Source: Phaeosaccion multiseriatum
Lineage: Eukaryota > Protista > Ochrophyta, other classes
DNA: 64,000 nt
Assembly (NCBI GenBank): GCA_965112735.1
Contig: OZ218963.1
Coordinates: forward strand, 682,001 to 746,000
Reading direction: 5' to 3'
The notes beneath the pieces were generated by a model. The model saw only the letters and a list, made by a program, of their open reading frames with translations, was not told the origin of the DNA and searched no databases. A program made the position numbers and the translations under genes. This document shows positions 451-14,449 of this stretch, piece after piece. How positions within the stretch are numbered: position 1 is the first letter of the stretch; the number at the start of each line of letters is the position of its first letter.

Positions 451-3400
451 CTGATCCTGTTCGTAGTCGGAGCGGACAACGTCACTGAGCACTCTCCGTG
501 GTTGCTCTCTTCTCTTCTCGAGCTTCTGCGCGTTCTCTAGACGAGCCACCTGAAACTCAAACCGATCAAGAAGGGAACGACGAGCAAGGGTGAATTCGTG
601 AGCAGTGGGGCTGAGAAAGACGTAACAACAAATTTACGCGGCGCGAAAAAAAAAAGAGCAAAAACGTTTCTCCCGCTTCCCATCCACCCCTCACCCACCC
701 ACCCACTCACTCACCCACCCACCCACCCCCCCCTCCTCCTCCTCCTCCTCCTCCTCCTCCTCCTCACCTTGTTGTTCCAAAGCCGTCCCTTCTTCGTATA
801 CTCTTTCGCCAAATCCTCCCACCGCTTTCGCAGTCCGTGCTTCCTCTTCCGCACCACCTTGGTCACCAGAGGCCGCATCAATCTATGTAACGCCTCCCTC
901 GCCCTCCACCCCGGGGACAGGAACGGCTCTTCATAAGCACCACAGATGGGCGACGCAGTAGCACCACCAACTGCTACCAAGCTCTCGTTTGGCAACAAGC
1001 TTGAGCTCTCACACTGCCTCTCGTCGTGCTGGTCGTGTTGGTAGTTTAACTGTGAAAGCTCAGCCTGTGCGGACGCCGCCGCCAGCCTGTTCTTCAGCAA
1101 CAGCCCTCTAACGTTGGCCATCCCTGTGCTCGTCAAGACGCTTACTCTGGGCCGTTTCTTACGGCGCTGCTGTATCACCAACTGCTGCTGCTGGTGCTGT
1201 TGCTGCTGCTCCAGCTGCTTGCCCTGCCCCTGCTCCCCGTTGGCGCCATCACCCCCGCCCCTCTTCTCGCCGCCATCGCCAGCCCCTGTTGCCGCCGCCG
1301 CCGCCGCCGCCGCCGCTGCCTCCTTCTCCTCGAAGCCTTCATCACCGCCCTCGGCCTCATGGACAGAATCGGTTAGCTCCAAGAAGTGGGGCAACAACAA
1401 CCCCAAGCCACCGCCGCTGTACACCCCAAGCTTTCCAAACTCCCTCTCCTCCTCCTCCCTTCGACACATTTCTCGATGGAGTTTCTCGGACCTCTCGACA
1501 CGGCGTACGACGGCTTCCAGATGGTCTGTTGTGTGTGCTAGTGCGACGCTGAGCTGTTCCACAGAAGGTAGGAGCAGTGAGCCCCCCCTTGCCTTCCCTC
1601 CCTTCCTCCCTCCCCCTTCCCTTCCCTCACCACTCTCCCCTCCCTTCCCACCATCTCCGTCATTACTCTTCATACTACTACTGCTCCTCTCCTCCTCCCC
1701 CTCCTTCTCCGCCTCCTCCTCCTCCTCCTCCTCCTCCTCGGTAAGGGCATGATCTCCTGCTCCCATCAAAGCCGTTTCGAGCCGAGAAGAATAGGCCCCC
1801 GGCAGGCGGCGCTTCCTGGACACCCCTCGGCAGAAGCGAATCACCGCTCCTGCGTCCTTGACGTCCTTGGGCGAAGTCATGAGGCTACTCACCGTTACAG
1901 CCTTCTGCCTCTTCCTTTCCCTTTCCAGTCTCTCCGCTTCCTCCGCTGCTTGCTCCGCTTCAAGCAGTGCTGCTTGTGCCGCTGCTCGCTCGGCCAGCTC
2001 TGCTTGCTCTACTCGCTCAGCTTCCCTCTTCCGCTGCTCCTCCACCCGCTTGTCCTCCTTCTCCTTCTCCTCCTTCTCCTTCTCCTCCTTCTCCTTCTCC
2101 TCCTTCTCCTCCCCTTCCTCCTCCTCCTCCTCCTCCTCCCTCCTCTTCCTCTTCCTCTTGACATCTTGTTGCTGTCCAGCGGTGGCCTTTGAAGGCTTTT
2201 CTTCGCCCACCGGTGGATTCTCCTTGGCGTCCCCTTCTTCCTCCTTCACCAAACCGTCCCCCTTTTTAGTACAATCCACGTCATCATTCTTGCTTACACC
2301 CAACCCCTCCTTGGCAGACTGCGTATGTGAAGCCACGTGGCTGCTTGCTTTACCACCTCGCCTTCCACTCATTGACCCCTTTCTCTCCATACGAACAGAG
2401 TCCAGGACGGAGGTCTCCTGCCTCCCTCCCTCCTTGCCGCCTTTCTTATCGTCGTCGATAACAGCACCGGTGGCTTGGGCCTGGGCCAGCCTCACAGGTG
2501 GCGCAGAACAAGGCGAAGGCACAGCATCCTCCCCTTCCTTCCCCGCGCTCAGCGGATTCAAACTCGAACTACTGCGCATCCTCTTCCGTCCCTTCCCTTT
2601 GCCCTTGCTCTTCATCTCAGGTGCTGCAGTTGGTGATACAGCAGAGGCAGCAGGGGGAGACGGCGATGAAGTAGAAGGGCCGCCTCCTTCCTCCTCTACA
2701 TCCATGGCCTCACAGTTGTCAACAGCGTCCTCATCCTCCCTTTCCTGCACATCGGAGAGGCTGGAAGCTTTCCGAGCAGAAACGCCGCTGCTCCCTTGGC
2801 CTTGCTCCTGCTGGTGCGGTTTCTGTAACCTTCCCTCCTTACCCCCCGCATCTTCCTCCGTAGCATCTCCAAACGAGTGCTCTCTCAGCTTCCTGCCCTT
2901 CTTAGCGGAGGACACGTTTGTGGCTTTCCCCGAGGGCACTTCCCCACCCCCTCCGTATGGTGGTGCGTCTCTTTCCTCGGCGGAGCTCGTACTCCGTGGG
3001 GTGCCATTTCCCCTCTGCTCCTCTGCAAGTTTGTTGAGTTTGGCCATGGCCTGATCGAGGAAGGGGCAGAGAGGGGGGGGAGGGGAGGAAGGGAGGGAGG
3101 GAGGGAGGGAGAGAGAGAGAGAGTGAGGGACAAAGAGCACCGTCAACAACAAGCAGAAGGACGAGGACACATGCGTGGGCGGTGCCGACCCTTGTACCAG
3201 TCCGTCTCCGTTCCTATGCCTCGACCTCTGTCATGTAGTATGCCTCCATCCATCCTCCCTCCTATAGGCCTCCATCCATCCTCCCTCCTATACGCCTCCA
3301 TCCATCCTCCCTCCTATATGCCTCCATCCACCCTTTTACTCCCACGTGGCACACCCACCTCACGAACGGCATTCTTCTTTTTCCTCTCTCGCTTTCGCCT

Positions 3401-12200: not shown

Positions 12201-14449
12201 TTGTGTCTCTTGTGTACGTCTCTTCTGTCTCTCTCTCTCTCTCTCTTTCCTACTCTCTTGCCTTCTCTCTCTCTCTCTCTCTCTCCCTCTTCTCCCGTCT
12301 CCCTGTGTGTTCTGTGTGGCCATGGAGGTGTGGAGGAACGATCCTAACCGCTTTGCTCTCCTACGCGGAAGGAAGGAAGGAAGGAAGGAAGGAAGGAAGG
12401 AAGTAATGTGTGTATTTCAGGAGTGCGGGTGTTGCAGGCAACGCCCACATCCCCCAATCAAGGATATAATGGTAGTTAGCTCAGACACACAAACAGCCCC
12501 TCACTCAGACGCCCAACCCCCCCCCCCTAACCGTCCTTCTCGCACGCACCCACGATGCACACATACACACACACACACACACACACACACACACACACAC
12601 ACACACACGCACTCGCAGGTGTGTCAAGTACGTGAAGAGCTTCAACCTGCCCTTGCTCGTGCTGGGGGGCGGCGGGTATACAGTGAGGAATGTAGCAAGG
12701 TGTTGGGCCTACGAGACGAGTGTGCTGCTCGACACTCCCATTAGCGACGAGATCCCCTACAACGACTACTACGAGGTCAGTGGGCAGGGTAGGGGTAGGG
12801 TAGAGGTGTATGGGCAGGGCAGGGTAGAGGTGTATAGGCAGGGCAGGGTAGAACAGGGTAGAGGTGTATGGGCAGGGCAGGGTAGAGGTGTATGGGCAGG
12901 GCAGGGTAGAGGTGTATGGGCAGGGAAGGGTAGATGTGGATGGGCAGGGTAGGGTAGAGGTGGATGGGCAGGGTAGAACAGGGTAAAGGTGTATGGGCAG
13001 GGTAGGGTAGAGGTGTGTGGGTAGGGCAGGGTAGAGGTGGATGGGCAGGGTAGGGTAGAGGTGGATGGGCAGGGTAGGGTAGAGGTGGGCAGGGCAGGGT
13101 AGAGGGGTATGGGCAGGGCAGGGTAGAGGTGTATGGGCAGGGCAGGGTAGAACAGGGTAAAGGTGTATGGGCAGGGTAGGGTAGAGGTGTGTGGGTAGGG
13201 CAGGGTAGAGGTGTATGGGCAGGGTATGGTAAAAGCACAGGTGGGGATCGAGGTGTATTAGCGAGTCTTTTTGTCGCAGTGTGTGCATTTAGACGTACGG
13301 TGACGGGTTAAGTGTATGTGTGTCTTGGAATCTCTCCATCTGTCTCTCTTCTCCTTCCCTCCCTCCCTCACTCACCCTCCCTTAACCTCTCTTCTCCCTC
13401 CCTCCCTCCCTCCCTCCTCACTCACTCACTCTGCTCTCCCCCCCTGTCTCTCCTCCCTTCACACACCACACACACACACACATACACACACACACACACA
13501 CACACACATTCGCCTACAGTACTACTGCCCCGACTACAAGCTCCACCTGACCCCCTCAGCGTCAGCCAACGAGAATACCAAGGACCAGCTGGAGAAGATC
13601 AAAGTTCAGTTGCTGCAGCACTTGGGCAGCTTACAAGGGGCACCGGGAGTGCAGATGCAGGAGTTGGCACCTGATTGGACAACGGCAGAGGTAAGGGCAG
13701 GGAAGGGGAGGGGAATAGGATGGCAGTGGATGGGGATGGGAGAGAGGATGGCATGGCAGTGAATGGGGATGGGAGAGAGGATGGGATGGCAGTGGATGGG
13801 GAGGGGAATAGGATGGCAGTGGATGGGGATGGGAGAGAGGAAGGGATGGCAGTGGATGGGGATGGGAGAGAGGAAGGGATGGCAGTGAATGGGGATGGGA
13901 GAGAGGAAGGGATGGCAGTGGATGGGGATGGGAGAGAGGATGGCATGGCAGTGAATGGGATGGGAGAGAGGATGGCATGGCAGTGGATGGGGAGGGGAAT
14001 AGGATGGCAGTGGATGGGGATGGGAGAGAGGAAGGGATGGCAGTGGATGGGGATGGGAGAGAGGAAGGGATGGCAGTGGATGGGGATGGGAGAGAGGATG
14101 GGATGGCAGTGGATGGGATGGGAGAGAGGATGGGATGGCAGTGGATGGGGATGGGAGAGAGGATGTGGATTGGGATGGGAGAGAGGACGGCTGTGAGTGA
14201 ATGCTCTCTTCCCTACTCGCCTAACAAGCGAACTGAGCACCCCTCACTGACTTCCCTCCCTGTTTGTACTGTCCATCTGTCTGTGCGCGCTTTTTGCGTG
14301 TGTGCGTGCGTGTGTGTGTGCGTGCGTATGTGTGACGTATGTGTGTGCAGAGAGACGAGGACGCGATGAGCGCTGATGAGCGCCCCCTCGTGAGCCTCAA
14401 CAAAGACGGGGGGGAGAAGCGAGAGCATGAGGCGGAGTTCTACAAGTAG
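9235..14449 (+). CDS. Class I (Rpd3 family) histone deacetylase. 11 exons: 9235-9265, 9634-9720, 10181-10344, 10611-10704, 10941-11004, 11339-11462, 11725-11799, 11936-12132, 12619-12775, 13520-13690, 14351-14449
   Basis: All junctions are GT-AG and in phase. Motifs: [93 protein letters not shown]. Ends HEAEFYK*. Has both HDAC1-like and HDAC3-like residues, so no symbol is given. Confidence 0.97.
12780..13230 (+). repeat. G-rich minisatellite (GGGCAGGGTAGGGTAGAGGTGTAT-like, ~20-25-bp units) in HDAC intron 9
   Basis: Imperfect tandem units visible, with many GGG runs. Confidence 0.9.
13700..14190 (+). repeat. G-rich minisatellite (GATGGCAGTGGATGGGGATGGGAGAGAG-like) in HDAC intron 10
   Basis: Imperfect tandem units visible. 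Confidence 0.9.

Follow-up and report, generated by a model that had tools for sequence, protein, structure and literature searches.

A divergent gene pair encoding a class I histone deacetylase and an N-CoR/SMRT-like corepressor in the ochrophyte alga Phaeosaccion multiseriatum

Complexes that unite an N-CoR/SMRT-type scaffold, a class I histone deacetylase (HDAC), and a TBL1-type WD40 protein have been described in animals, in yeast (Set3C), and in plants (PWR-HDA9-HOS15), and the yeast and plant assemblies have been cited as evidence that this module is conserved across eukaryotes (PMC5943563). Here we analyze a stretch of 64,000 nt from the alga Phaeosaccion multiseriatum (assembly GCA_965112735.1, contig OZ218963.1, positions 682,001-746,000 of the forward strand; "the window" hereafter), in which a class I HDAC gene lies head-to-head with a gene for an N-CoR/SMRT-like corepressor. 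Taken singly, the two genes are unexceptional representatives of known families, and some of their stramenopile counterparts already carry such an annotation; it is the conserved arrangement of the pair that is of interest. We consider it probable, at roughly 60%, that the pair encodes a co-expressed class I HDAC and a giant, low-complexity N-CoR-type scaffold, the SANT1 domain of which, together with inositol phosphate, would activate the deacetylase.

One of the closest described counterparts is the animal N-CoR/SMRT-HDAC3-TBL1-GPS2 complex. As in that complex, the algal scaffold has a collinear pre-SANT region (IxAENRxKA, LYxEPxxxP, RWxxLAxEY, VRSxxExxxI), its full-length algal relatives possess a DAD-like SANT1 domain with SANT2 about 200 residues further on, and the window HDAC carries the sequences HPMK, GDRLG, and TVRN. 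Unlike their animal counterparts, the algal genes are linked head-to-head, an arrangement that we do not know for animal N-CoR/SMRT and HDAC3 genes. In addition, the algal HDAC is by similarity not an HDAC3 orthologue, and the scaffold differs from animal N-CoR in having no detectable Pfam GPS2_interact domain and in its low-complexity N-terminus of 2,000 residues. Nuclear receptors are not known from these algae, and recruitment must therefore differ from that of the animal complex. Yeast Set3C (Snt1-Hos2-Sif2) and Arabidopsis PWR-HDA9-HOS15 likewise combine a member of the paired-SANT scaffold family with a class I HDAC, and we know of no report of scaffold/HDAC gene linkage in yeast or plants. 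Members of the same family are the proteins labelled 'nuclear receptor co-repressor 1' in Fistulifera solaris (P0027), Seminavis robusta (P0030), and Nannochloropsis oceanica (P0248), to which the conserved region of the window is 25-38% identical, always just upstream of SANT1; the window protein is, however, much longer and more repetitive than the annotated stramenopile co-repressors. With respect to gene arrangement, the pair resembles the divergent histone H2A-H2B pairs in being head-to-head, in having a spacer of less than 1.5 kb, in being conserved over long distances, and in encoding products that are expected to act together. It differs from them in that the algal linkage has been lost in several lineages, in that an enzyme and a regulatory scaffold are encoded rather than like subunits, and in that co-expression is putative here.

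The divergent pair and its linkage across ochrophytes

The HDAC gene on the plus strand and the N-CoR-like gene on the minus strand diverge from candidate ATG codons at 9235 and 8444, respectively, which confirms the observation, made in an earlier note on this DNA, that the two genes are divergent with about 790 bp between their start codons. The 790 bp between the two codons (8445-9234; GC fraction 0.57) constitute a putative shared promoter. Contigs obtained from genomic sequencing runs on this sample reach across the spacer (8483-10082 and 8323-9206), and the adjacency is therefore not obviously an assembly join, these contigs being from what is probably the sample used to assemble the window and hence not independent support.

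Head-to-head pairs with short spacers are also present in distant relatives. In L005, a 9.6-kb contig of a pennate diatom with an HDAC 91-99% identical to Pseudo-nitzschia/Fragilariopsis-type sequences, the HDAC ATG (3364, minus strand) and the candidate ATG of the N-CoR-like gene (4046, plus strand) are separated by ~681 bp, and in the bolidophyte Triparma laevis (Bolidophyceae; L037) a spacer of 1,350 bp separates the N-CoR-like gene (4576-8650, minus strand) from the HDAC gene (10001-12046, plus strand). The Triparma scaffold gene, although annotated simply as a Myb gene, encodes the pre-SANT motifs of the family together with a DAD-like SANT1 domain and SANT2. Looser linkage, within 2-3 kb, is seen in Nitzschia and Fistulifera: the divergent orientation is retained in Nitzschia inconspicua (L031) with one intervening cyclophilin gene, and the HDAC gene of Fistulifera solaris (L032) lies 3 kb upstream in inverted orientation, with two genes intervening. 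The HDACs adjoining N-CoR-like genes in diatoms and Triparma are 63-72% identical to the window HDAC. We built an HDAC tree of 115 sequences, the 120 listed relatives comprising a single ochrophyte orthogroup and two garbled vertebrate HDAC2 entries. Branching order in this tree follows the organisms (non-diatom ochrophytes, Triparma, centric diatoms, pennate diatoms), and the window HDAC falls outside the clade of Triparma and the diatoms (Shimodaira-Hasegawa-like approximate likelihood ratio test support, 99). Because there is one HDAC orthogroup and it tracks organismal relationships, the HDACs that adjoin the scaffold genes are orthologues.

The simplest reading of these data is an ancestral head-to-head pair that has been eroded or lost several times; should there have been two independent origins instead, the case for selection would be even stronger. 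We regard the pair as an old microsynteny of ochrophyte algae, and the conserved linkage suggests that the two proteins work together. The survey of synteny across stramenopiles proposed in the earlier note thus gives a positive outcome in Triparma and the pennate diatoms, though the linkage is not universal, a number of other ochrophyte lineages lacking it. Narrow searching of the literature found no description of conserved HDAC/N-CoR linkage, or of N-CoR in diatoms.

The deacetylase and its candidate partner

The HDAC gene (9235-14449, plus strand) has 11 exons, at 9235-9265, 9634-9720, 10181-10344, 10611-10704, 10941-11004, 11339-11462, 11725-11799, 11936-12132, 12619-12775, 13520-13690, and 14351-14449 (including the TAG stop codon), with GT-AG at every junction and an intact reading frame encoding 420 residues. 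There is no internal stop, and residues 1-417 align end to end at 77% identity with a relative, P0225, that carries PF00850; the PDB sequence matches of the window protein are HDAC1/2/3. Support for the gene model is provided by two extra residues in the stretch NVGEFTDCPVF, which agree with the family consensus, and by the place of the first intron, which is common to the diatom orthologue. This intron follows ...VSYFYH both in the window (9235-9265) and in the L005 HDAC gene (~3330-3364), which is otherwise almost intron-less, and its position is therefore old. As expected for a class I (Rpd3-like) enzyme with the Hist_deacetyl fold, the catalytic motifs ([22 protein letters not shown] and GGGGY) are present, with GGLHHAKK at residue 133, DIDIHHGDG at 170, CGADS at 257, and GGGGY at 295; these contain the catalytic His-His pair, the Asp and His ligands of zinc, and the tyrosine of GGGGY. 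All of the motifs quoted in the earlier note are found in the spliced protein, namely HPMK (22), [10 protein letters not shown] (61), HPRVLY (163), GDRLG (264), TVRN (300), and the C-terminal EFY (417). The three basic motifs HPMK, GDRLG, and TVRN, assigned in that note to the inositol-phosphate site, are therefore retained as it had claimed.

The same cannot be said of the HDAC3-like marks that were also attributed to this enzyme. We compared subfamilies by PDB bit scores and Swiss-Prot identities, with P0225 standing in for the window HDAC in the whole-protein scores; an AlphaFold model of P0225, of mediocre quality (mean predicted local distance difference test score 69), served only for the identity table. 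In phmmer searches with constructs of equal length, P0225 scores 640 bits against HDAC1, 630 against HDAC2, and 587 against HDAC3, and among the fungal enzymes 555-562 against yeast Rpd3 and 547 against Clr6. Exon 8 of the window gene itself scores 109.7 bits with HDAC2 versus 89.1 with HDAC3, and the exon that contains [10 protein letters not shown], one of the supposed HDAC3-like marks, scores 58.7 versus 54.5 (exon 3). The C-terminal EFY was a further such mark, and AEFY proves to be the consensus of the entire ochrophyte HDAC orthogroup. Structure-based identities of P0225 are 62-66% to HDAC1/2, 60-62% to HDAC3, 60% to HDA9, 59% to HDA6, 58% to HDA19, and 60-61% to rice Rpd3-type enzymes. 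Hence, unlike Hos2 and HDA9, which belong to an HDAC3-like branch, the algal enzyme is about equidistant from these groups. The window HDAC is not HDAC3-like on these comparisons; it leans slightly toward HDAC1/2 and lies about equally far from the plant branches. The inositol-phosphate residues do not discriminate between the subfamilies because, in the HDAC1-MTA1 and HDAC3-SMRT structures, they are common to HDAC1/2 and HDAC3.

We propose that the two genes would share promoter sequences within the short divergent spacer, so that expression of the enzyme stays coupled to that of the scaffold, and that the SANT1 domain of the scaffold, which is DAD-like in all full-length relatives, would bind and activate the HDAC together with inositol phosphate, as SMRT-DAD does HDAC3. 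The pre-SANT region seen in the window may be a docking surface for a TBL1/Sif2-type partner. Several observations weigh against this proposal. Bit scores and identities place the HDAC slightly nearer HDAC1/2 than HDAC3, and it is with the HDAC3/Hos2/HDA9 branch that N-CoR-type scaffolds pair in animals, yeast, and plants (PMC5943563), so that the scaffold could in truth be partnered by a different paralogue. At no fewer than eight other loci, Thalassiosirales among them, one of the two genes has no counterpart within 10 kb: Cyclotella cryptica, Thalassiosira profunda, the P0055 contig, L017/L018, three Nannochloropsis-group contigs, Chrysophaeum taylorii, and L038. On the side of the scaffold, the coding sequence lacks a bias in G+C content at third codon positions (GC3; 0.52-0.63 versus 0.77 in the HDAC), and the only sequencing runs that contain the locus are genomic and show no splice joints. 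Furthermore, the SANT domains of the gene itself are expected to the left of the window, and Pfam GPS2_interact (PF15784) was matched by no window piece, by none of the diatom relatives examined, and not by P0002, a genuine phmmer match of the conserved part of exon 4.

Alternatively, a genuine and ancient linkage may be neutral or a matter of loose co-expression, with the scaffold pairing with another paralogue of the HDAC3/Hos2 type and the HDAC belonging to Sin3-/ELM2-SANT-type complexes. Although we regard this as unlikely, it is the most serious of the alternatives. In its favor, the HDAC scores nearer HDAC1/2 than HDAC3 throughout the comparisons, its relatives bear the Joint Genome Institute label 'histone deacetylase 1/2', and the linkage has been lost repeatedly. 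Moreover, two to three class I HDACs occur in diatoms and in Ectocarpus (PMC3145265, Table 2), and another paralogue could therefore be the partner of the scaffold. The margin over HDAC3 is small, however, and there is no preference relative to the plant enzymes HDA9, HDA19, and HDA6. The HDAC/N-CoR-like pair is also the only one retained by lineages as distant as the window alga, Triparma, and the pennate diatoms, each time divergently and over a comparable distance, and the HDAC retains the inositol-phosphate motifs listed in the earlier note just as the SANT1 domain of the relatives retains most of the matching DAD motifs.

More ambitiously, the HDAC/N-CoR-like pair might be an operon-like unit, selectively maintained from an early ochrophyte ancestor, in which an N-CoR-type DAD scaffold has a dedicated partner that leans toward HDAC1/2. 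We advance this idea only tentatively, and it is perhaps doubtful; if true, the pairing of scaffold and enzyme would be older or more flexible than the HDAC3-specific pairing of animals, fungi, and plants. The chromatin repression machinery of ochrophytes, including diatoms, is known almost wholly from homology lists. A linkage that this alga, bolidophytes, and pennate diatoms have kept since they shared an ancestor provides a sequence-independent prediction of the deacetylase used by the scaffold, names a concrete HDAC/scaffold pair for tractable species, and bears on the timing of the N-CoR-HDAC module relative to the split between HDAC1/2 and HDAC3. We view the pair as a useful lead of moderate interest, and not as a new kind of system.

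Gene model and family of the minus-strand gene

The minus strand contains three very long low-complexity open frames, from which we assembled a model of five exons. Candidate exon 1 (7923-8444) encodes an N-terminus rich in Gly, Ser, and RGG; its frame opens with a first ATG at 8444, and the donor after 7923 reads GTGAGT. The giant low-complexity exon 2 (3954-7453, or 7450) has its acceptor after a pyrimidine tract and is in frame with exon 1, and exon 3 (3359-3692), also in frame, has canonical GT-AG on both sides. The conserved pre-SANT domain begins in the 122 codons that end exon 4 (768-1133 of 768-3050), and its second part is encoded by exon 5 (451-549; VARLEN...DVVRSDYEQDQ). A (GTT)n intron (1-450) then runs off the left edge of the window, beyond which exons for SANT1/DAD and SANT2 are expected. 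Spliced together, the five exons give a stop-free protein of 2,245-2,246 residues that continues past this edge, with four in-frame GT-AG junctions; the junctions were chosen by eye as obvious GT..AG sites with a pyrimidine tract, each flanking a microsatellite.

Several points favor the view that exons 1-5 form one long gene reaching toward the HDAC gene: the four junctions keep frame, an RxRLGWGMG motif is common to the giant exon and the N-termini of Nannochloropsis-group relatives, and a diatom orthologue has an RGG-rich N-terminus. The sequence RPRLGWGMG occurs twice in the giant exon, at 4682-4708 and 4394-4420 (minus strand), with RLGWGMGL of the second copy being identical to that in P0095. 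The pattern R.[RK]LGWG is found in 5 of 109 family proteins, all from the Nannochloropsis group and each time N-terminal to the conserved domain. A wider form, G-R-x-R-L-G-W-G-[MQ]-G-[LI], is present in both window copies and at about residues 150-420 of P0094-P0097 and P0100, but in none of the diatom and animal proteins examined. The motif may be a lineage-specific docking motif. Diatom orthologues have 800-1,100 residues ahead of the conserved domain, and the N-terminus of the L005 orthologue resembles candidate exon 1 in its RGG content. BLAST comparison of the low-complexity exons with the N-termini of the relatives gave no match outside the conserved domain. Exon 1 is the weakest part of the model.

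If the model were wrong, the frames between 3954 and 8444 would be a separate gene or non-coding; the start of the N-CoR-like gene would move to about 3 kb, and something else would be the divergent neighbor of the HDAC gene. The purely genomic basis of the model leaves room for this idea, as do the T-poor composition of the strand, which favors long open frames, the lack of GC3 bias, and the lack of a Pfam match. GC3 neither supports nor refutes coding of the giant exon, however, and of the three frames on the minus strand a single one stays open there for ~4 kb, the remaining frames being no longer than 269 residues. Given also the four in-frame GT-AG junctions, a motif in the giant exon otherwise confined to N-CoR-like N-termini of the Nannochloropsis group, and the long or RGG-rich N-termini of the diatom orthologues, we find this explanation improbable. 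Even without exon 1, the spacer would be at most ~1.9 kb, with no other recognizable gene inside it.

The claim in the earlier note that the minus-strand gene encodes an N-CoR/SMRT-like corepressor holds up well, although direct searches reveal little. Pfam gave no meaningful match for the three long minus-strand open reading frames, the conserved exons, or an 89-residue spliced piece, a search of the ESM Atlas with the conserved exon returned only noise, and a PDB sequence search with P0002 found no match. A word-seeded homology search with an 819-residue open reading frame was likewise empty, its length filter and its seeding being the probable causes. Of the two matches obtained by phmmer when the 122-residue conserved part of exon 4 was compared with 1.8 billion proteins, P0002 is genuine (E 2.8e-5), and exon 5 is 59% identical to the corresponding part of this protein. 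The top match, P0001 (553 residues), was rejected as a false positive, since it contains six near-identical repeats, has bacterial-type Pfam matches (DUF7882/DUF2059), and aligned with the query in the basic helical part of the latter; single-sequence evidence for the conserved exon was therefore thin. A scan based on P0002 alone, a three-row alignment being too divergent for this purpose, yielded 29 metagenomic or metatranscriptomic loci. One of these, L003, has an open reading frame of 1,879 residues in which the conserved region (~926-1146) is followed by two SANT/Myb domains. Searching with the conserved region of L003 retrieved ~100 stramenopile proteins and, farther off, mollusc N-CoR proteins that contain PF15784 (E 7e-17 and 1e-14). 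A protein that clusters with P0100 bears the name 'nuclear receptor corepressor 1-like protein [Nannochloropsis oceanica]'.

We then relied on a profile, fam1, that covers only the pre-SANT region and was built from the window and 65 stramenopile relatives. It matches the window with 103 bits in two collinear pieces, the window itself being part of the profile; the exon 4 part scores 83.5-86.8 bits and exon 5 forms the second domain. The profile also aligns collinearly with the mollusc N-CoR P0106, at 277-299 and 312-440, the latter match falling between GPS2_interact (PF15784; 203-285) and DUF7952/SANT1 (484-575). The VRS[DE].E motif of exon 5 aligns with VRSDAELEQI of the mollusc protein, and the helical region that N-CoR proteins conserve from the GPS2 coiled coil to SANT1 (LYxxPxxxP ... 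W/Y ... VRSxxE ... I) is thus present. Only IxAENRxKA of GPS2_interact can be aligned, being inside the PF15784 match of P0106 near its C-terminal end, and PF15784 itself was matched only in the animal members examined. In dozens of relatives the profile gives collinear matches that without exception directly precede SANT1, which starts ~65-100 residues past the VRSEYEQ motif. Every full-length relative examined, whether from diatoms, the Nannochloropsis group, or Triparma, has a DAD-like SANT1 with FPK[DN]F, FYY, and SK[QK] that closely resembles SANT1 of mollusc N-CoR; these motifs correspond to the positions of SMRT-DAD that contact inositol phosphate. SANT2 follows at 1382-1426 in L003 and at 5140-5289 in the Triparma locus. 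Hence, of the domains for which the earlier note had proposed a search, GPS2_interact was missing by Pfam from the window and the spliced piece, and SANT1 and SANT2 were found in the full-length relatives only.

For the pre-SANT part that lies within the window, assignment of the minus-strand gene to the N-CoR/SMRT/Snt1 family is solid at the level of sequence comparison, on account of the collinear match to mollusc N-CoR between GPS2_interact and SANT1. It is most improbable that the gene encodes a generic Myb/SANT protein with a merely compositional resemblance to N-CoR/SMRT, as might be thought from the lack of Pfam, Atlas, and PDB matches and the single true match among 1.8 billion proteins, given the collinear profile matches immediately before SANT1, both in dozens of relatives and in mollusc N-CoR, and the close similarity of their SANT1 domains, in which FPK[DN]F, FYY, and K[KQ] are common to both.

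Repeats and neighboring genes

The window region is eukaryotic and intron-rich, with ~58% GC and numerous microsatellites, and almost all introns of both genes center on a microsatellite or minisatellite. In the minus-strand gene, satellite-built intron parts are located at 1-446, 3242-3334, 3877-3953, and 7560-7849, and consist of (GTT)n, a 26-bp unit, (GCGT)n, and (CTGT)n-type 12-bp units. The corresponding repeats in the HDAC gene (plus strand) are at 10090-10165, 10376-10479, 12793-13231, and 13718-14170, with introns 9 and 10 containing minisatellites of 24 bp and 33 bp.

Apart from the pair, the initial 34 kb of the window contained no gene with a match at the loci compared. Unlike the window, the three Nannochloropsis-group contigs (L035, L039/L040, and the P0094 contig) place the N-CoR-like gene in the order EFL1-like GTPase, Arf, N-CoR-like, Med14, with no HDAC gene nearby. 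A gene for a SpoU-type methylase lies a few kb upstream of the HDAC gene in both Chrysophaeum taylorii (L036, 8255-9009) and Triparma laevis (L037, 1433-2290), which hints at a wider ancestral neighborhood and at possible loss of the N-CoR-like gene from Chrysophaeum. Finally, a EukProt record for the dinoflagellate 'Alexandrium tamarense' (P0069/P0258) falls into the same 90%-identity cluster as a Thalassiosira pseudonana protein, and is probably diatom contamination.

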